From positions 9,270,451 to 9,334,450 of the forward strand of contig NC_134035.1 of the NCBI RefSeq assembly GCF_964204645.1: 64,000 nucleotides of DNA. The letters run 5' to 3'. Of this stretch, positions 2,439 through 17,000 are shown piece after piece. The first letter of the stretch is position 1. Each line of letters begins with the position of its first letter. The translations under genes and the position numbers were made by a program. A model generated the notes under the pieces. That model saw only the letters and a list, made by a program, of their open reading frames with translations, had not been told where the DNA came from and made no database searches. The stretch comes from Tubulanus polymorphus. Taxonomy: Eukaryota > Animalia > Nemertea.

Positions 2439-3399
2439 CTAACGACTACGACTCCCGATCTGTAAAACACAATACACACATCATCAATTCACTTATTGAG
2501 ATTCAAATAACAGACCTTACCACCGGTCGTCATCTCTTCAGAAGCCTATCAACGTACAGGACTGTCTTCTATAGACCAGTACCAACTCTATCAATAATTG
2601 AATTACAATAGTCTCTACACACAGTTTTGTACCGTGTCTTCATGTAAGTTTAACAACACTAAATGTCCACGATGATTGTTGTATACATTTCATCTATATT
2701 CTATATTCCTTTAATGTTTAAATGTTTACGTATAATAGCTCTTTGTTTCTTCAGTTCGTCTGTGTCTAATACGTTAATTGTTGCTTGTCTCACTGTCATG
2801 TCACTACTCGTCACCTTGTAATAAATCAGTTCCAGTTGTGGTATTCCAAACTGATAGTTCATTCGTTACTTCTTCGCTCTGTTCCGGATTTCCGACGTCG
2901 ACCATTCTTCGAGAATAGGGCAGAAAATAGCTTTGCTAAATAAGCATATCGTTCACGTGTAAGTCATAAGCCGCTATCACACTGGATTCCGCTGGATTTC
3001 CCTGGAAAGCTGTTTATTCAAGGTAGTATCAAAACTGTTTCCTGGCATCGAGATCTAAACTGGCCGTTTGTACTAGTGTATCAATAGAATGTGTTAATCC
3101 GCCGGAGATGTCATTAATCAGTTCTGTCTTAGGATCGGATAATTAAATGACCTGCTGCTGCCGGTGCCGCTGCTGGTCAGCGATGATGAATTAGTCGCCA
3201 ACAACAAGATAAAGGCTGAGAGATCAGAAACTCTTGAGGATGATTTACATCCGTGTCTGAAATAGCCGATGATGAGACTCTCTCTTGTCAAGTAAACGTA
3301 ATTAGGACGCGACACCACCAGATGGCGTGCTTAGGACTTACTCGATGTTAGGTTTAAGTTTATACAAATCCCTCCAGTGAATTGTGTATATACGTGTGA

Positions 3400-3636
3400 T
3401 ATATCTTGCTGTATATAATTCAATCTCTGTACTTGCTTTGTTTGTAAATAGTTTTATTACTGAAAGTTTGATATTAAATTTTGTTAATTCCTATTTTGTT
3501 TTGTATATATGTATATAATTCTGTTCATGTTTTGTCAATTTTTATATTCCATATTTTGTATTCAATCTTGCCTCCACGTACCATTCTTATGGTTGGAGTG
3601 AAATAAATATCTTATCTTATCTTATCTTATCTTATC
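3400..3636 (+). mobile_element. Probable 3' remnant of a non-LTR retroelement ending in a (TCTTA)n tail
   Basis: T-rich tract, then AAATAAAT immediately followed by about five TCTTA units. Confidence 0.45.
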
Positions 3637-4242
3637 GATGGTGACTTAATAATCAAAATTTAGTGATATAAAGATCTTTTAATAATAGAGGACATAATAA
3701 GGAAATGAAGTTAAAAGCAGAAATTTTCAATTTGTCCACAGTTCTCAGATGCGACGAGGACACGAGGTTGTTCGACTTTCGGCGCTCTTACAGTTCGGAT
3801 CATCTAATCTATAATGTCAAGAACATCGACACAAATTAACAGCTCAGCATTAGGTAAAATCTTCGCGCGCAAATCATCGGGGTAAAAAACCGATTACGAG
3901 TTTGAATGTACTGAAAATATCCATCGATATTAATCATATTAAGACTGAATATGAGTTTCGTCTTTCTGTATATAATTCATGATGATAATTGATCGCAGGG
4001 AATGCGACACATGTGTTCGTTTATAGTGCTCACCGCCGACGACATTCTATTGTATTATGATATATCGCTTGAAACAAATGAGTCGTTTGAAATTTCAACA
4101 ACTGTAAACCATGTATATCGCCTTCCTCTCTGTCTATATATGTAGGTATTATCAGGTATCGAATCTACATAGCCTTGCATCTTCCCTTGCAAACATTCAT
4201 CTAATTCCTTAACCATTCATGAAACTGTCACGATAATACAGA

Positions 4243-4510
4243 CAGGGTCCCCACAGATCAGTAGTTGCTGGATATAAGGAGTTTTAAGGAGAAAATTTCA
4301 AGTTTTTAGTGTCCGCGTCACTTTCATATTCCAATACGACAGACTTCTCCTGAATCAGTACTGTTTATCTCGGTAGACAATTATTTCGATGGTTTTATAA
4401 GTAAATTTTTATCCTTTTACACTATCTAAACTCTAATTCGGTAACTGCAGCGCCTAATAGGGTTACAAAAAGACCATGGTCCCAACTGGCAATTTCAGAC
4501 TTCAGACTAA
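4243..4510 (+). mobile_element. CAGGGTCCC-terminal MITE family, partial copy
   Basis: Starts CAGGGTCCCCACAGATC and aligns by eye with the copies at 6158, 7026, 37653, 39129 and 57170. Confidence 0.75.
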
Positions 4511-6157
4511 AATGGTGAATGTCTGAAAGGGTTGGGGCCAAAATAATGAGTGATACTTTTCCTAAACACGTCGCATTTTGAGACATAGAACTTACTTCAT
4601 GCGGAACTACACAAACAGGTTCCGTTTATGAAAGTAAGAGCCGATACAGGTGTGAATTCAAGTATTAACGCCGATTAATTCTAGCAAATATTTATTCTCG
4701 GAAATTCCTCTCTGATCCCTGCCCCTTAAGGACCAGTAAACACTTTCGATAAACGTTTAACGCATAAAAACCCGTGCGTAGGAAATTCCTCTGTATTCGA
4801 CAAAATCATGCTGTTTCTCAAGAATGGAAATTTTCCTTTCAATATCCGATTATGCTGAATACGGGTTTACAAGTTGAAACCAAGTAGAAGTTAACTATTT
4901 ATTTGTCGCACGAGCTTTTATCAGGTGAATGAGTATAGTCAATAAAAAAACAACAGTATTTATAGGTAGACTGACAATATTTACAGAGAACTGAGTGAGA
5001 AGAGTAATATTACAAATAAATGATAAGTGACGTGATAATTAATAATAGCTTCTATTCATTAGAAGCGAAAGCTTGTGTGACAAATAAATAGTTAACCTAT
5101 ACAGTACTACTCGTCTCGTAACTTATTTTAAACCTGGTTAACACGGCTACTCTACGAATATTCTCAAGTTGAAACCAAGAAGTCTTTCTAAAGACTGCTC
5201 TCACGTCTAACGAAAACCAGTCCACCAATTATGGATCCAAAATTTTTAGATTTTATTCCTGGAACCCCTGGTACTTGTTTCATTGGTGACTATCAAAATC
5301 TTACTTCCAGTATTCAGGGACGAATTTAAGGGGTAAAGTCTCAGGGCTCCGAGAGGAGGACCTTTCCGCTGTGGTTGCCCTTTTGGTCGATACAAAAATT
5401 GTTAAAATCTGCCAACTGAAAATTCATTCTTTGGCAAATTGCATATTTTCGGATGCATTTCTCGTCCAATCCCTCGGACATACCCCACACGGCCAATGAC
5501 ATGGCTGCTTTATCTAAAAATGCTTTTCCTTTCTTCTGGACCCCGGCCTTCCCAATTGCCTAGATCGACCCTTGCCGGTACCGTGGAGCTGGATCCTGTA
5601 AATCAGTCCACTTTAGTATCTCTTCAATAGAACTTTCTTGCGAATATCGTATATAAACATGATTGCCCTACAAACGATATTGAAATCGCCTCTAGACGCT
5701 CTCTCTCCTCCCGAGGTCTGGATGTTATTGCTGTAGCGGTGAAAAGAATGTTTTTGATGCAACAACTCTGAATGAACTCGAAACATCTGATATATGCACA
5801 GATTCAGGCAGAAATGTTCTTTATTGGTTCGATACCCGAGAGAAGTGATTGATGTGATAAATCTATTCCTCATGCTAATACTACAACGAGGAGAGTCAAC
5901 TGTCGACTCGACTGACGCTGCTAACAATTTCTTCAATTATGCCGCAGCAAGAGAAAGTGAGACTGTCGGCCTCCCTGACGACACCTCGGCCTGCCTGCTG
6001 TATGTGTAAGCCGAGGTGAGTCAGGCAAATAGATCGCACAGGTTGCTGTTATACTTAATGAATTATATCCGGGCATCGAGTATTTAAAGAGGGCGTGTCG
6101 AAAATGTCACAACTCTCAGCGCTCAAATTTTGAATCACAACAAACCATCAACTAGTA

Positions 6158-7435: not shown

Positions 7436-8493
7436 ATAAAGAGACCCTCAAAATCTTCGAAATAACAAAAACTTTGGAAAGTAAATACACAGAACAAGAA
7501 AACCAAAGAGAGGTTAAACGGCAGGATCTGAAGTTTAATGGGTTCTATTTTCTAAGTTGACGAGACTTGCATGCGACGAGGCCACTTAATCGGCGTTAGA
7601 AAGTAAACTACCAGATTCGAAATTCAAAGGGCATTTCTAAAGTGGACAGGGCCACTGAATCGGTGTGTAATAATAAGACATAGGAGTACAGCATGGATCA
7701 GGCAAGCGTGCAAATGCTGTCCGTACTATACTGAGTTCTCGAGGCGTGGAACTCATTGACGAGATTCTCCATTCTTTTAACTCATAAACCTGTCCTATAT
7801 TCGCGATACTCGAAACGCTCTTCTGATATACGACGTGACATTTTTGTCGGTGACAAAAATTCACCCGAGAAATTCCGTTTATTTGCGATCTATTCAAGAC
7901 GCGATATCCTTAAACAAACGCGCGCGGTTTTTTTTACTATTGAATCACCGCGCGATATTCCGCGTAGAACTATATATACAGTCAAAAAGTGTCAAGGCTT
8001 CGAAATGATTGGTGCATTATTTATAAAACATTAAACACGGCTTTAGAATTCAGAACCTTGTCAACTGACGGCGTAAATATATAGATAGATATAGATATAG
8101 GTAGGTAGGTAGGTATGCCCTCCTAATGGGCCGACAACTCGATCCCGATAAACCTGAGACTCGTTTGATTTAATTCAATTAAAGCAAAGCGAAAAGAACT
8201 TCCCACAATTTTCCACAAATCGTCGAATAGAATTCCCCACATTCCCTAACACAACATGAAAACTGCTTCAACTTAGAATAACCTGTACACTTAAACACGT
8301 GAACGACTAAAACTCAATATAGGCGTCATACACATCTAAATGACTTTACAACTTACCTTTAAGAAATTGAAAAGACAAACATCACTTTGGACTGTAGAGA
8401 TGTCTGTGTCTAGTCTACGAGCAATTATCTAACGTTTGATAATTGCTCGTAGGTCCAGTTAAGCGTCAGTTACTGTTACCTCCTAGTTAAGAT

Positions 8494-9590: not shown

Positions 9591-12171
9591 TTTTCTCTAT
9601 ATACGGTATAGGCTTATAAAGAAATGATTCTGAAATTCCATTGAAATAACAGTATGAAAATGGACTACGCTAACCTTAAGTAGTTCTTGTTATTTCACCA
9701 CAATAATAATCACAATCAGGAGGCCGAATTGTATGAAATAGAATCTGTTTAATATCAGATGGCCTTCTAGTGGGAAGGGTATAGGCTACCACCACGCGCA
9801 TATAAATCACCGAGAATACCTCTAAATCATGTTATCTTTAAGACATGTAGTACTTGATAAAACAGAAGTCAGAGTTGAAGACAACATTCCATAGATTCAT
9901 ATTCCATTCTATAACGAATTCCAAAGTGTCACTGACTAACCTAAATGCTATGGGGGGGGATGAAATTAGCCGAATTATCCACCGCTAATCAACTGAATTG
10001 TGTGAATACAAGTGTAACAGCCACACACGCCTAATAGATAATAGTTAGGCGTATACTACAGGACACATTGATTAATAGTAAGGCCTATTTGATGTCATTA
10101 AAGTAATCTAAATTAGTCATAACAGAATAGTCGAAGATATAATAATGGAAAGTTGTGTGACTATATTAGGACTACGACAGGACAAGTGAATCTTGACCTA
10201 TTTATTTTTACTATATCAACACTCGAAATATTCAAATATTGGCCGAACCCCAACAACCTACGACTACGAAGACTTCAACCGACGCATTTTATCCCTGATG
10301 TAAGGTTAACACAACAATAGATTTTAACCAAGTGAAAGGCGTGATTGTAGGCTAGACTGGTTCCAATAATTGGCAATCAACCAGCGTGTGCATGTGCACT
10401 GTTCTAATAATGCTGCAAATTGAATGAGTCTTTAACTACTGAATAAGATTGTTCAACCAAAAGATCCTGATTGCGAATGTGACCGCGAAAATGTAATTTT
10501 ACAAAATGCAGGACGGTTAGGGGTGGGACTACACTGCTTTAGGCTAAATCTGTGTGTGTCCCCAAATTGTGGAACTTACTACCTGCCTTACCCAAATTCT
10601 CTGAGCTGGCCAAGCTGCTTCCCCATAGGGTTTTAGGTAGACTAACATAATCATACAACTGATTCAGATTTCGCTGGTATTTAGAAATCCAAGTGATATT
10701 TACGGGGAATCGAGCATCCACAGAACTATTATTAGATTAACTCAACATTATTTAATTTACTACTACAATACAAGACTCAACCCGGAAGTGATTTCTTACG
10801 GCTAATTGATCAATTTCTAATTAACGAACGGGCTTCAATTTTACATATCTATTGCCACCCTAATAAAAACCTCTATTTTCACTACCTGATTAAAATTGTG
10901 ATTCAACTTGCCGCTGTTCAATCGCCATATAATCCACGAATATAATATCCGAAAATCATCGAAATACCGCAAAACAGCCAGTGTCCACCATCTTGTTTGT
11001 GTTGGCTGTTCCGATGTTTGGATTTGTCATCCCTCCGCTTCAATAACCCTAACCGTAATCTGCAGCGGGGTGAAACCTATTATCGAACAGCCAGTAGTAA
11101 TAGTCCACGCGATCGTCGCAAGGTAGCAGCATCGGCCGGGAAATTTTAATGTCCGAAGGCGCGGATTTTCAACCACAGAGGGCTCACCGATTAGAGCAGT
11201 ACAGATTTATGTAAAAACAATAATCTATTACTTCAATGTCTATAGTATATATAGTATATTATCATTTTATATACATTATAGACATTGGATTAATAGATTA
11301 CCGTTTTTACATTAATCTAATCTGATACGAGCCGTCAACGGCCTCCGTTATTTTGAAAACGCTTCTTAGTTAAATTTTTAACAAACTATACATTTTGAAT
11401 GACCAAAAATATTCATTCTAGGTGTTACATTTTTACTTCCCGAATACTGCCTCACAGCGCCTGTGGTCGTCGGAGTGGGAAATCATGTACGCGGCACGGC
11501 CGGCGGATCAGCACAGCCGCCGCCGGGTGTGGCTAAGGAGAGTCGTTTCGGCACCCCAGTAGTAAGAGGCTTGATTACCGGGCATGGACTACCAGGTGGG
11601 TGGTGTGTGTTGGAAACTATAGTTAAAATTCGGAATATTCAAGCTACAAATCCCGCGGGCAAGAGGCGAGTCGACCGGGCACCGTCGCCTGCCTGGTGGC
11701 GTCGGCGGCATCTTCTCGTCGGGGCATGGTAGGAGTAATCGGCCCGGAAAAGCGAGTGAATCATTATTCCTATCAGAGGCGCGATACTCGCTTTCTTCTA
11801 TTTTCCATTGATTAATACCGAGGTAACATGAAATTAGCTGATTATGGAGAATATTTGTTATTCGACACATGATGCCTTCAGTACACGTAAACCATAAGAC
11901 GGCCGCCTGGAAAGTACACACACATATCGTTTTTTCGATTATAGTTGACTTCTGGACCAGCCTCAACCGATCCCGTTTACGAATCCATTGAATGACCATT
12001 TTGCTAAATAAAACAACTGTATTCTCATTTAATTTCTTTTTTTTTTATTATGGAAAGGAAATAAATATAAAGAATTCCAACTCTTTTTTATTTAACGTAA
12101 ATACAAAACAATATCACAAAAATAAAGCGATATGTATCACTTGTGTGTGTGTATGTATTGAGCAGACTCGT

Positions 12172-12670
12172 TTATTCTATTTCGACTGATTCCGGAATTT
12201 TATTGAAATTGCGCAAAAAGATGACTAGATCTTCGTACGAAATGAGTGTCGCGAGATGTGGTCGAAACGGATGAAAGTTAAGTAGTTTCTCCGATGCTTG
12301 AACGATCAATGACCGGTCGACGATCAGACGAACGTCCGCCGCAGACGGATACATGAACGAAAACGGTGTAACACAGCCAGGGTTTGATTTGAGTATTTCT
12401 AGTAAATCGGTCGTAGTCGCGAAAGATAAGTTACGATGCGCTTTCAAATTGGTTTTAAGACGTTTCAAATCGACAGGGGAATCTTCGCGCGTAATGACGA
12501 AATAGAATTCGCCTTTGCGGTCTTTCAAAAACAAGTTCTTACAGAAGATCCCGGGGTTTGGATCGTTTTGCCGGTCGCTCTCCCTATAAACGACCGTCCG
12601 GACGCGAATTCCCAGATTACGGAGGGCGAGATGCAGATCGGGGTTAGGGATCCCCCGATCTACGTCCCAT
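12172..12670 (-). CDS. YbaK/ProX superfamily aminoacyl-tRNA deacylase (PrdX / ProXp-ala / PRORSD1-like), lacking an in-frame AUG; predicted start AUG 12670 (or 12751) plus a +1 frameshift at 12649-12644
   Basis: Motifs KNLFLKD (conserved Lys), GCVTP (GxxxP loop), LNFHP and LISYEDLVIFL are typical of ProXp-ala proteins. The frame is open from TGA 12720 to the stop at 12172. Its only ATG lies deep in the domain, and the ORF-track start at 12702 is GTG. AATAAA signals occur at about 12090 and 12046. Confidence 0.85.
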
Positions 12671-12677
12671 CCTCCGC
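12619..12677 (-). other. 25-bp RNA hairpin with CCC-UAA in its loop and AUG 12670 in its 5' arm
   Basis: 5' arm GCGGAGGAUGGGACGUAGAUCGGGG, loop GAUCCCUAA, 3' arm CCCCGAUCUGCAUCUCGCCCUCCGU. By hand: 19 Watson-Crick pairs, 4 G-U pairs and 2 A-C mismatches. Confidence 0.8.
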
Positions 12678-12955
12678 CAGACGTGTCCGAAATCGACTCC
12701 ACGCCGTCGACACCGGATCAAATGGGAACCGGTGACTCCCGGGAAATTCATAATCTATACCACGCTTCTCTCGCAGAGTTCATTTTGGCGGGAAGAAAAT
12801 CGGTGACTCTGTCAACGGAGAAACGATCTGATTCATGATCTGATTGTTGGATTCACATTATTCTGGTAAATGCAGTCTCAAATGCCGTAAATTCATCGCG
12901 TAGGTCTGGTTTCCGAGAGAGTAAGTCGACTGTCGAAACAGGTCGTCATTTCCAT

Positions 12956-13563
12956 CTGCAAAATAAAAAGAAGCGGCGGCGATAAAAATGTGTTGTAATA
13001 AATTTAGTAATATAAAACAGTATAACGTAGACTACAGCTTGTATTTATTGCGTAGGTTTTATATATCAGATGTCCCCAGTGGATGACAAAATGTGGAGCG
13101 ATAATTCATATCGATATATAGATATGTGTCGACCTCGCAGATGTTTTCGATCACGCCATATAATCGTACACACACATATATATATATATATTCCTCGTGA
13201 TAAGAATATCTCCAGGGCAGCTCTTTCACATACACACGATCCGGGGGCGTTAGAAACATATGTTGTTTTGGAACAGCGATTTAGCACAAAAACGACCACG
13301 CTTCCATAAACCTAGGTCACCATATACAGCATACAACGTCAACGACGCTTTAGTTTTTCCAATGGATAAACGTTATCGAAGATTCGATAACACTGTTTAT
13401 GTGCGAAATGGCAGTTTACTAAAGGCTATAGCTCTTTAATATATACACAAGACAATATTCGTAAAATAGAGAATAGAACTCATTAACTAGACCTAAAAAT
13501 GCTTATGTTAATTTAGGTTAGATTTAATTATCTACGCTGTTATAGCCCTACCAAAACTCTTAC
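12956..13563 (-). other. Predicted intron joining the NUPR1-like exon to the ProX exon
   Basis: Donor AG|GTAAGA lies 1 nt after the TAA stop; acceptor CTTCTTTTTATTTTGCAG|ATG at 12956/12955. Confidence 0.7.
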
Positions 13564-13564
13564 C

Positions 13565-13846
13565 TTATTTCTTTTCCAAGTGTGGATGCTTGTTGTGTTC
13601 CATGTTATGCAGTTTTGTGACCAGTTTACGCGTATGACCGCACGTATCGGGATGGTTCGTGTTTTGGCTCGCTTCCTTCTTGCTTCTCATTTTTCCGCTC
13701 TTACCGGAGAACATATGCTTGTCGTGGTCGAACGTGTAGTGGTCGTACTCGTCGTAGCCTTCCATTTTCTTTTCTTGGCCTTCTAAAGTTTCTGGTGTAC
13801 TAGTAACTTCAGTAACCGTAGTTTCTACAGGTTTCTCCTCGGACAT
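13565..13846 (-). CDS. NUPR1: Nuclear protein 1 (NUPR1/p8) family stress protein, 93 aa
   Basis: YDEYDHY...GKSGKMRSKKEASQNTNHPDTCGHTRKLVTKLHNME matches the p8 signature (GRKGRTKREAAANTNRPSPGGHERKLVTKLQNSE). Confidence 0.9.
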   Translation of the reverse strand: MSEEKPVETTVTEVTSTPETLEGQEKKMEGYDEYDHYTFDHDKHMFSGKSGKMRSKKEASQNTNHPDTCGHTRKLVTKLHNMEHNKHPHLEKK

Positions 13847-13924
13847 AAAATGAACTATAACCGCGAACGCGACTCTTCAACTGTTTCAGGTTTGCAGACG
13901 AAATGAAACGCTACCGCGCTGGTG

Positions 13925-14091
13925 TTTATATACGCAATAACAAACATGATGTCATCGGCAGCCAATCGGATTTATCGATGACTTATCAAAGTGCCCCGCT
14001 ATTGGTTGAATTTATTTCTGACGCAATGACAAATGCTATTTTTAGACCCTGCCCTGGTGATTTAGTAAACACGGCAACGTGTTCCACGTCA
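13925..14091 (-). promoter_or_regulatory. NUPR1 promoter with TATA, CCAAT, CRE-like, C/EBP-ATF and UPRE motifs
   Basis: TATATAAA 13932-13925; ATGATGTCAT 13946-13955; CCAAT 13962 and ATTGG 14001; TGACGCAA 14019-14026; TGACGTGG (minus) 14091-14084. Confidence 0.65.
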
Positions 14092-17000
14092 TGTCATTGC
14101 AAACAGCTGTCGCAATTGTGTGTCAATCGAACGTGTAATATTTACTGCGAATTCGAGCTCGAATTTTCTCGAAACAGTAGCGTTCAATATTTTAGGAGTG
14201 GATTGTCGAGCAGACCCAGGCGGGAACACATTAATTTGGCATTAATGACACCCTTTTTATTTCGATCTAAGAGTCTTGTGAAGCTAGTCCGATCCACTTT
14301 TATATCGCAGTAACAAAGATGAGGATCAAGAATTTTGCAGAGCGAACCGCAAGATGCCCTGGGCCGACTACGACTTGCTGGCTTTGGGCGCCAATGGGGT
14401 ATTCGTAAATTGTATATTCCACTGACGCAAACAAAGCCCGTTTCGCGGCATAAATGGTCTCAAAGTTATCATATCACTGAGATTGCAGCCTGCGCCTTAT
14501 CAATTAGCTCAGCGCAAAAAGAGATCCCACTTTTCATGCACAGGGCCCGGTTCAGGGAGGCCGCGGCGGACCCGAGTCGAGAAAATTATGTAATTCATGA
14601 AACAATACTCTAAACTAGGTAACTTGAGAAATAAGAGTAGGAAAATTAATTCATATCACGGCAGGGGCCCGCCGTTACTTCACTCAAGCACCTCAATTTG
14701 AATCTGTTCAGAATTTTCATTGATTATTGTTAATGGTCCGGCATCCGGTGTCAGTTGACTTCTAGGGTCATTCTCAAATTCCCGGCATCCCGAAGCAGTT
14801 CCCGGCCCCTGGAGTCGCCCTGCCCCAGGCTAGAACAATTCCAGTAGTGTAGCGTTTTGGTGCTGTTTCATAAATTTTAGAATTTCTCGAATTTAGAGTG
14901 GGTCGATTGTACGTACATCAAAGTCTTTTATCCTGCATTATGAGTTTTCCGGTTTGCTCGGCTACCCGTACCGGCGGGGTAGTCTAGAGAGGCCAATGAA
15001 ATCTCCGGTTTGCTGAACTACCCCTCTTTGCGGGGATGCGGTATGCTGATGTTTGATCTGACAGTTTCAAGTGGTTAATGGCTGTTTCAAGTGCTTACAA
15101 CGATGCTTATTACTTCGTGGTACATGGTGGTTTAAAAAAAGATTTCATAATAATACGCACACCGCGTGGGCTTCGTAGAAAGACCACTGCCTGTGGCCTT
15201 CCCAAATTTTAATCGTCCTGTCCGATTTGGTTTCGTCCAATTGAGAGACTGCCTTTTCCAATAAGGGCATTTTTGGATCACATCACTCAGGAAATGACTT
15301 GCACTTTTGGGCCTCTTCGTCGGTTCCACGTGTTTCATTTGAGCTATAGACCACAATGGCGACACCATCATGGTCAGAAACTGACCAATTGAGATATCCC
15401 CGAGTCTTGAACACTTGACTTCGAATTTCGGAAATTTTTCAAGTCATGTTTGTTTTCAAACTACTGAAGAATCATTGCAAATTCATAAACTGACCATCAC
15501 TGACCACCACTGACCAATTCAAACTCTTTGAATTTGAAAACGATATACCGCGTTATGGTGTCAAACTAGAAAGGATTCGCTATAGATATTGAGAATTCAT
15601 GACCATCACTGACCAATTCATGCTTACCAATTAATTACTATCATATCATCGCCAACCTAACTAGAAATACCCTGATACTAATTTACTCTTTTAAAACTAA
15701 TTCATTTAAAGAAGAATTGCCAGTTAAGGAGTTTGAGAGCAGTTTTGAAAGAGTTTGAGAATTTTCTCGGAATCCGGCCTGCAAATCGGTAAACAGTTCG
15801 TTCAGTCCGGCCGTTAAAAGTGTCTGGCCAGCGAGTATTATGTTAGTTCACGTTTTCTCCGCTTTCGTTATACATAGGGGCAGCACTAGACGGTTCAGAT
15901 CACTATTTTTTATAGTGGCGGGCTCGTTTCAAATGCGTTATTTAATGAAACCATTCTCTTGATTAAAGGCTTTACAGCCACTTTTTGTAGACACGATTCT
16001 CACTTTTCTTTCATACGATCTTTGATTCGGAGTCTGTAGATGTTAATACAGTCCACGGGACGCCAATACAAAGGGGCCACCACGGCTTCCGCTCGAATCA
16101 TCAAATCATCCCCGGAGGCTGGGTGATTTGATACGATTTGAAGAATGGTAGACTCACAAATTTGTTTCGAAAAACTGATATGAATATCAAAACTGAACGA
16201 GAAACCTGAAACTCATTCATAATAATTAATATTTTAAAAAGTGGGACAGTATCTTGTCAGCCGTTTGTGGATCAACAGGCGTCAAATTCATCTGTGCTTT
16301 ATCTTATTTGGGCTACACGTGAACTAGCAAATTATGATTAGGAAAATCGAATTTGATTTGACAAGATAAAGTTCGCCTTGATTATTCAAACAAAAATTAT
16401 TAAAATTTAGTAGTCTCTACTTCGCCCAGTGATCCCTCCACCAATTATAGTCAACTTACCAGACAGTTTTCAATAGTGAAAGATTTCAAATAATAACAAG
16501 GCTAAAAACCGCGAGTTTTAGTCATCATTGGTCGGTCGATTTTCTTCTCATTTTACTTGGTTGGTTACTTTTGGTCGGTATCATGATTTACTTTTAATGG
16601 TTGTTACAATTTTGGTCGGTACTATTTTACTTTTGGTCGGTATTAGACGGCTTTTGGTTGGTATCAGACGGCTTTATCAGTATTGGACGGTTTTGATGCA
16701 ATAAATTCTGAATTGAAGTGGAAATTCACCCTTGATGGCTATAGTGACAATCAAAAAAATTTCGCAATTACTCTTCGGCAGCAACATTCGCTTCTAACCG
16801 GTCAACAAGTGTCAGTGTGTCCGGTTTAAAGTGTTTAACTGTATTGCCTGATATAATCGATTATCATATTTTGCGGACGTACTCGTCTCCGCACCATGTT
16901 GGTGGGAATATAGGGTTGAAAAAAGAGGTGGATTGCAAGATAACAAAAAACCACTGACTGGTGAACTAATTAAGTTCAGAGAAGCTAATTAACTAACAAA

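Follow-up and report, generated by a model that had tools for sequence, protein, structure and literature searches.

The 64,000-nt stretch of the Tubulanus polymorphus genome analysed here (NCBI RefSeq assembly GCF_964204645.1, contig NC_134035.1, positions 9,270,451 to 9,334,450; hereafter the window, to whose positions all coordinates refer) contains, wholly on the minus strand, the open reading frames (ORFs) of a NUPR1 (p8)-type stress protein and of a ProX-type tRNA-editing enzyme. That the two are encoded on one spliced transcript, as a preliminary description of the sequence had proposed, is supported by contigs spanning the splice junction in two studies, by mRNA-like contigs of relatives that carry both ORFs, and by the recurrence of the gene order and of the stop-adjacent donor site in other genomes. 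We put at roughly 0.62 the probability that the locus is a single transcription unit whose mature mRNA, capped and polyadenylated, is bicistronic. A promoter of the TATA/CCAAT/CRE type (CRE, cAMP response element) would drive exon 1, which holds the complete NUPR1 ORF; a 608-nt intron would be spliced out, and exon 2 would bring a 253-nt spacer and an intact ORF of the ProXp-ala type. NUPR1 would arise by ordinary cap-dependent initiation, and its stop codon, held beside the exon junction, would spare the mRNA from nonsense-mediated decay (NMD) that depends on the exon junction complex (EJC). ProX would come from the same mRNA by non-canonical initiation at an NUG column (GUG in Tubulanus), where a covarying hairpin 30-33 nt downstream would hold the small ribosomal subunit over the start in the manner of a Kozak hairpin or of the alphavirus downstream loop (DLP). 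A stress-induced promoter would then raise tRNA-Pro proofreading along with NUPR1.

Six public runs from two studies (P1, 2024; P2, 2014) contain the locus, and the contigs of four of them were aligned on positions 10800-16000. The preliminary description had placed a donor 1 nt after the NUPR1 stop and an acceptor about 600 nt downstream that opens the ProX exon, and had pointed to the 13564/12955 junction as the feature to look for. An exact joint at these positions was found in contigs of run X2 (study P1, depth 4887) and of run X4 (study P2). The 608 nt that it skips have plus-strand ends CT..AC, which read GT..AG on the minus strand. That is, the NUPR1 TAA is followed by G/GTAAGAG, with 13564 as the last base of exon 1, and the acceptor is ttttattttgcag/ATGGAA, and exon 2 opens at 12955. 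One X4 contig, 1,011 nt long, consists of 13889-13564 joined to 12955-12271, thus covering p8 and 685 nt of exon 2. No further joint was found between 12271 and 12955, where the RNA contigs are collinear with the genome. Run X1 showed an even depth of about 40 over exons, intron and flanks and no joint, and is therefore DNA-like.

The Tubulanus evidence is made up wholly of de Bruijn contigs from libraries of unrecorded type, and the joint could on that account be put down to an assembly artefact or to a processed DNA copy. Its GT..AG ends, however, fall exactly at the predicted sites in two studies ten years apart, and relatives yield collinear spliced contigs, one of them poly(A)-tailed. Furthermore, a search of the species' own genome assembly (268 Mb, 77 contigs) returned one locus each for p8 and for the ProX-like type, hence no retrocopy; since no intronless copy is present in the assembly, the joined form must derive from RNA. 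We find an artefact or a DNA copy scarcely credible.

In X2 the depth is approximately 3,200-4,900 on 12251-12957 and 13564-13787, 4-7 in the intron and 0-8 outside, so that intron depth is about 0.1-0.2% of exon depth. The bin means of this run can be reproduced from the listed exon contigs plus an approximately 6-fold background; for example, the mean of bin 12888-13061 equals 3,980 x 70/174 + 4,887 x 28/174 plus a contig of depth ~6.7. Because the bin means are accounted for in this way, they leave no room for transcript starts in the intron or at the acceptor, nor for an isoform that carries NUPR1 only and stops at the AATAAA in the intron. Such an isoform had been held out earlier as a caveat, and is not supported, with an intron depth in X2 of ~6 as against ~4,000-4,900 on the exons. 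Neither ProX-only nor NUPR1-only forms were seen in the contigs, and the depth accounting in X2 bounds starts in the intron or exon 2 at ~0.2%. The available data thus show the bicistronic form to be by far the dominant RNA over both ORFs.

The same data bear on whether the locus could be an operon-like unit, in which spliced-leader (SL) trans-splicing at 12955 or an internal promoter would give a translated, monocistronic ProX mRNA. Rare isoforms of this kind are beyond the reach of contigs, a TATA-like TATATAAAA lies in the intron ~100 nt 5′ of the acceptor, and L025 and L027 are ProX contigs of other taxa with no p8 upstream. Yet the depth of X2 at 12958-13061 is fully explained by the contig of depth ~6.7, and that of exon 2 (~3,200-4,000) is not in excess, lying no higher than that of the junction contig (4,887). 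No leader and no loose end was found at 12955 among the 18 loose ends listed out of 116 (in contigs, not reads), nor was any other joint seen there. Moreover, the 5′ ends of the p8-ProX contigs L001, L011 and L012 from related species are homologous 5′ untranslated regions (UTRs) rather than a common leader. A monocistronic source of ProX is in our estimation highly unlikely.

Both ORFs belong to well-defined families. The NUPR1/p8 ORF matches the Pfam family Phospho_p8 (PF10195; 1.1e-23, 84 bits against a cut-off of 25) over profile positions 3-58 of 58, spanning the basic helix-loop-helix-like core, and is 67-83% identical to the p8 ORFs in L001, L011 and L012. Its AUG stands in a weak context (cattttAUGu), of which the U at -3 and the U at +4 (13843-13852) are kept throughout the four related species; downstream, the first AUG in frame is Met28 (aaaAUGg), in a strong context. 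The ProX ORF matches PF04073 (tRNA_edit, YbaK/ProX superfamily; 3.8e-22, 79 bits against a cut-off of 25.5), and its nearest sequence relatives in the PDB are PRORSD1 (8huz) and ProXp-ala (5vxb), with best matches of 1e-13 to 1e-15. Look-alikes in the ESM Atlas were generic bacterial tRNA_edit clusters only, and the prokaryotic library NCBIfam matched neither protein, as expected. Like the free-standing Ala-tRNA(Pro) deacylases ProXp-ala and PRORSD1 (5vxb, 8huz), the Tubulanus protein consists of a single tRNA_edit domain of ~170 amino acids with the CKN lysine motif. It differs from them in belonging to a distinct animal 'ProX-like' clade marked by GIFCKNLFLKDRKG, and Ala-tRNA(Pro) deacylation is its predicted activity. 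A second tRNA_edit paralogue, 33% identical, is encoded on contig C1 of the Tubulanus genome and is possibly a PRORSD1-type gene.

The ProX ORF retains all 22 invariant columns of 15 animal homologues, including C54-K55-N56. Relative to its three closest relatives, dN (non-synonymous divergence) is 0.34-0.43 and dS (synonymous divergence) is saturated at 2.7-3.7, giving a dN/dS of ~0.1. Judged by such evolutionary criteria, ProX is a live gene. One may ask nevertheless whether the ProX stretch is in Tubulanus effectively a NUPR1 3′UTR, that is, an ORF whose AUG is gone and which is translated barely or not at all: it has no in-frame AUG at its start, an in-frame TGA (12720-12718) lies upstream and six short ORFs stand ahead of it, the two single-nucleotide polymorphisms found in the stretch both change an amino acid (12572, R>Q; 12603, V>I), and dN to relatives is slightly higher for Tubulanus. 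Such a decay is hard to reconcile with 176 open codons, the full set of 22 invariant residues and a dN/dS of ~0.1 at dS >2, in what is the sole copy of the ProX-like type in the genome. In addition, L012 likewise has a non-AUG codon (UUG) at the start column of an intact ORF, and both the start context and the hairpin are conserved. We therefore rate the loss of ProX as a translated gene as quite unlikely.

The pairing of the two genes extends well beyond Tubulanus. The closest ProX homologue, P0001 (52% identity), is encoded on the 1,372-nt contig L001, in which p8 (56-325) and ProX (566-1105) are collinear with the spliced and not the genomic form of the Tubulanus locus. In all, six p8-ProX contigs are mRNA-like (L001, L002, L011, L012, L019 and L023), and L012 runs from a cDNA (complementary DNA)-adapter-like 5′ end ('acatggg') through both ORFs to an AATAAA and a tail of 27 A. 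In L019 and L023, sequence matching p8 exons 1 and 2 of the loci L006 and L022 continues into ProX without the gap of ~2 kb, indicating that the intron is removed in the L006/L022 clade too. In genomic DNA, p8 precedes ProX on the same strand in L003, L004 (the hemichordate Glandiceps talaboti), L005, L006, L018 and L022, and this order was found in 7 of the 7 genomic loci with enough flank, Glandiceps among them.

The position of the intron is conserved as well. All 8 genomic loci examined have a consensus donor just past the p8 stop, at distances of 1 nt in the window, 4 nt in L003, 2 nt in L004, 16 nt in L005, 11 nt in L006, 22 nt in L018, 9 nt in L022 and 11 nt in L014 (Paralvinella palmiformis). 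Both the NUPR1-ProX adjacency and the stop-adjacent intron, for which the preliminary description had suggested looking in related genomes, thus recur. A first stop codon near the last exon junction allows escape from EJC-dependent NMD, and the argument to this effect made earlier for the Tubulanus transcript fits the 1-22 nt range of these distances. In L014 the donor (GTAACG, 8199-8216) is present, but ProX was not found within 8 kb downstream, which a longer intron or the loss of ProX from the unit would explain. The architecture, with p8 first, the donor 1-22 nt past its stop and ProX on the next exon, is thereby shown to recur in distant animals, and the pair looks like an old two-gene transcript. 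In L004, L005 and L006, p8 is missing from the called genes though tblastn finds it there; at bicistronic loci, annotation tends to retain one product and to leave the other gene unannotated.

How ribosomes would reach ProX is a separate matter. No AUG occurs in the ProX frame ahead of residue 116. Three RNA/DNA contigs match the window across the start region without indels, so the missing AUG is not an assembly error. The start column reads GUG here, AUG in L001 and L011, and UUG in L012, with a purine at -3 and a G at +4 in all four species (G at both positions in Tubulanus). Downstream of it, within the coding sequence (CDS), lies a hairpin (minimum free energy -29 kcal/mol) that starts 30 nt 3′ of the start codon in Tubulanus and 33 nt 3′ of it in L001, L011 and L012. 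Across the four-species comparison, pairing holds in 93.8% of cells, and compensatory changes are seen at 12 of the 20 pairs; none of 500 shuffles reached the observed value, and shifted registers gave ~40% pairing. Among 12 bicistronic relatives, which represent three clades, 9 have significant start-proximal hairpins, scored as the window minimum against dinucleotide shuffles. A covariance model of the Tubulanus hairpin matched just its four training sequences, so the hairpins of other clades are its analogues in position and not homologues that could be aligned. In L013, which comes from the same sample as L012, 77 nt including the whole hairpin are missing relative to L012 (~660-740), with TTTGG direct repeats at the bounds. 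This could be a skip over the stable stem by reverse transcriptase or in assembly, or a real variant.

Downstream hairpins of the kind described by Kozak favour initiation at weak or non-AUG codons. By analogy with these and with the alphavirus DLP, initiation at the NUG column aided by the hairpin is the favoured route to ProX, as we infer. According to PMC4872096, the DLP works at 25-40 nt from the AUG and allows initiation to dispense with eIF2. The Tubulanus hairpin falls within this range of distances and covaries. Like the DLP and the Kozak hairpin, it is a very stable stem-loop within the CDS ~30 nt 3′ of the start. Unlike the DLP, it belongs to a cellular mRNA and to a second cistron, where its role in initiation is putative, and the hairpins of other clades, at +17 to +39, cannot be aligned to it.

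Another route would be a programmed +1 frameshift of the antizyme/RF2 type, in which ribosomes starting at AUG 12751 reach the CCC-UAA at 12649-12644 and the tRNA-Pro slips from CCC to CCU and thereby into the ProX frame. A CCC codon before a stop is a classic shift-prone arrangement, and the sixth short ORF of the spacer, which ends in this way, runs one base ahead of the ProX frame. Both species without an in-frame ProX AUG (Tubulanus and L012), and also L001, have an AUG-fed overlapping ORF ending in CCC-UAA. Moreover, C-CCU-A is identical in 4 of 4 species, compared with 4 of the 30 conserved codons for amino acids with at least three codons. The latter is, however, an event of ~2-3% probability that a requirement on the loop could explain. 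Since the site is part of the loop, the hairpin is not placed to stimulate a shift from downstream. L011, for its part, has CCC-UAG, yet its feeding frame lacks an AUG, and both L001 and L011 have ordinary in-frame ProX AUGs. CCC-UAA or CCC-UAG is present in all four species. A shift is possible, yet it would be neither required nor general, and the NUG column with its conserved Kozak context offers a simpler route. On balance, frameshifting appears unlikely.

Two further routes were considered and rejected. Readthrough of the NUPR1 stop would proceed in the wrong frame and end after 32 codons. Splicing out, as a small intron, the two in-frame TGAs that separate ATG 12783 from ProX is at odds with the collinear RNA contigs, and the candidate GT..AG span of 64 nt is not a multiple of 3.

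Initiation at the NUG column would have to take place behind a spacer with several features of its own. Database searches took the exons one by one, and the joined exon order served to list ORFs. On this order the spacer holds six short ORFs that start with AUG, and overlaps of the AUGA or UAAUG kind connect four of these. The preliminary description had noted that splicing creates UAA-G-AUG at the junction. The AUG is indeed created, but it opens an upstream ORF (uORF) of 20 codons that ends at a TGA, and not ProX. A 'relay' of short ORFs with overlapping stops and starts was considered as a conserved feature and dropped, since it is seen here and partly in L011 and is absent in L001 and L012. 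The element GGCATTTGAGAYYGCATTTAC (12886-12866) is identical at 19 of 21 positions in Tubulanus, L001, L011 and L012 despite dS >2, and has a single occurrence in the 268-Mb genome. AUG stands before it in two species and ACG in the other two, and it could be an internal-entry or regulatory RNA element or else a uORF encoding a conserved peptide, AFE[IT]AFT. Two more conserved blocks, GGCAGAGTC and (A/T)TGAACTCTG, lie at 12780-12820 on the minus strand and at the equivalent positions of L001, L011 and L012. They hold a perfect 6-nt complement, CAGAGT/ACTCTG, 24-100 nt apart, which is invariant, so that covariation is uninformative on its pairing. RNAalifold over the whole spacer gave no other convincing helix, and an Rfam scan of 12000-14100 gave only a sub-threshold mir-297 match on an intronic TA/TG microsatellite, which was treated as chance.

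Several points weigh against a bicistronic mRNA that yields both proteins. On the side of the transcript, X2 and X4 were taken as RNA from their exon-only coverage and precise intron skip, the library type being unrecorded, and the evidence consists of assembled Logan contigs, to which the starts, ends and rare isoforms of transcripts are invisible and in which a gap in coverage is no proof of absence. The X4 contig ends at 12271, leaving the final 100 nt of ProX uncovered, and the depth of X2 falls near 12191, so that the 3′ end in Tubulanus is not fixed by contigs. On the side of translation, the evidence is evolutionary constraint on both ORFs, and synthesis of ProX is a prediction. The 93-codon NUPR1 ORF, its internal AUGs and the six uORFs make scanning and reinitiation look inefficient, and a model based on the hairpin and the NUG codon leaves the passage of the 40S subunit beyond NUPR1 and the short ORFs unexplained. 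The hairpins of other clades, at +17 to +39, are not uniform in position, and 3 of the 12 relatives have no significant hairpin. Finally, p8 was not found within 10 kb of the ProX-like genes of Mytilus and Haliotis, which bear long N-terminal extensions, and it is absent within 2.8 kb of ProX in L026; the p8-ProX linkage is not universal.

The region upstream of exon 1 resembles a stress-responsive promoter. On the minus strand it contains a C/EBP-ATF-like site, ATTGCGTCA (14027-14019), a CCAAT box (14005-14001), an ATTGG (13966-13962), a CRE-like site, TGACATCA (13954-13947), and TATATAA (13932-13926), which we infer to be functional sites. The order of CCAAT boxes, TGAYRTCA and TATA is common to the regions 5′ of p8 in L003 (460-580), L018 and L005, and across the taxa that share this layout the CRE-like TGAYRTCA lies ~20-25 nt 5′ of the TATA box. 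The C/EBP-ATF-type site of L003 is ATTGCATCA, and the region upstream of p8 in L022 has CCAAT boxes and TGATGTCA without a TATA match. The sharing of this layout across distant taxa suggests ATF4-type stress control. Farther upstream of the locus, 14800-16000 is a high-copy repeat in which contig depths reach thousands in every run and joints and loose ends abound.

The features of the locus are collected in Table 1. At its 3′ end, TTTTTGTGATAT at 12100-12125 on the minus strand is conserved ~50-100 nt past the ProX stop in three species, within the 3′UTRs of L001 and L012. This implies that the 3′UTR in Tubulanus probably extends past 12100, although contig depth drops near 12191.

Table 1. 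Features of the NUPR1-ProX locus of Tubulanus polymorphus, in window positions
Feature	Positions	Strand	Basis
Promoter block	13926-14027	-	Read in sequence and motif scan
Exon 1 (5′ end approximate): ~45-55 nt of 5′UTR, complete NUPR1 CDS and 1 nt	13564-13900	-	X4 contig start at 13889, TATA ~30 nt upstream; 3′ end set by joint
NUPR1/p8 ORF, 93 codons plus TAA (13567-13565)	13846-13565	-	Pfam Phospho_p8
GT-AG intron, 608 nt, starting 2 nt after the NUPR1 stop	13563-12956	-	Joint 12955/13564 in X2 and X4
Intronic AATAAA	13049-13044	-	Read in sequence
Intercistronic spacer, 253 nt, at start of exon 2	12703-12955	-	ORF listing and translations
21-mer GGCATTTGAGAYYGCATTTAC in spacer	12866-12886	-	Four-species comparison
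Sixth short ORF, 35 codons, ending CCC-UAA (12649-12644)	12644-12751	-	ORF listing
ProX-like (ProXp-ala type) tRNA-editing ORF, 176 codons, opening with GUG	12172-12702	-	PF04073
RNA hairpin, 20 bp with 9-nt loop GAUCCCUAA, 30 nt 3′ of GUG	12624-12672	-	Folding and covariation
Two AATAAA: 12204-12199 and 12176-12171 (the latter overlapping the ProX stop)	12171-12204	-	Read in sequence

Polycistronic mRNAs, including stable, conserved bicistronic ones that encode unrelated proteins, are rare in animals, known examples being stoned A/B and Adh-Adhr in Drosophila and SNURF-SNRPN and GDF1-CERS1 in mammals. The NUPR1-ProX transcript would resemble these in having one capped, spliced and polyadenylated mRNA with two complete, non-overlapping and unrelated ORFs that are conserved between species. 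It differs from them in the intron placed 1-22 nt past the first stop in every genome examined and, in the Tubulanus clade, in a second ORF that would start at an NUG codon 30-33 nt 5′ of a covarying hairpin, translation of ProX being predicted. There is also a likeness to proteins encoded by long uORFs, such as the MIEF1 microprotein ahead of MiD51 and ASDURF ahead of ASNSD1, where as here a small protein (93 amino acids in this case) lies 5′ of a larger enzyme ORF on one mRNA; the upstream ORF of the present transcript, however, encodes a well-known, independently conserved family and is probably the main product of the mRNA. With the SL operons of nematodes, tunicates and chaetognaths the locus has in common two same-strand genes with a shared promoter and primary transcript. 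In SL operons the pre-mRNA is cut and trans-spliced to monocistronic mRNAs, whereas here both ORFs are cis-spliced together and lie on one mature RNA, which makes an SL-type operon unlikely.

Full-text literature searches, partly swamped by peroxiredoxin 'PRDX' matches, found no mention of a NUPR1-ProX transcript. NUPR1 appears in PMC4568590 only as a small ORF on zebrafish long intergenic non-coding RNAs. The transcript is thus of a known but rare kind, the bicistronic animal mRNA, with a gene pair that is apparently undescribed, and the hairpin with its NUG start may prove to be a variant mechanism if experiments bear it out.

A bolder reading, which we hold to be doubtful, is that of an ancient bicistronic 'stress operon' dating at least to the common ancestor of hemichordates and Tubulanus, in which NUPR1 would be made from the cap-proximal ORF under an ATF/CRE promoter and ProX through a DLP-like hairpin at an NUG codon without normal scanning or eIF2, aided by the 21-nt element. 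If true, production of ProX would be favoured while the integrated stress response blocks ordinary initiation, and with this hairpin the alphavirus DLP would gain its first cellular counterpart. The bicistronic arrangement itself joins a much-studied stress and cancer family, NUPR1, to a translation-fidelity enzyme on a highly expressed transcript, in a layout conserved among a hemichordate, Tubulanus and several further animals. Its cis-elements can be tested, namely the stop-adjacent intron, the invariant 21-nt block, the NUG start and the covarying hairpin 30 nt downstream, and each conserved animal bicistron is a natural experiment on how the eukaryotic ribosome reaches a second ORF.

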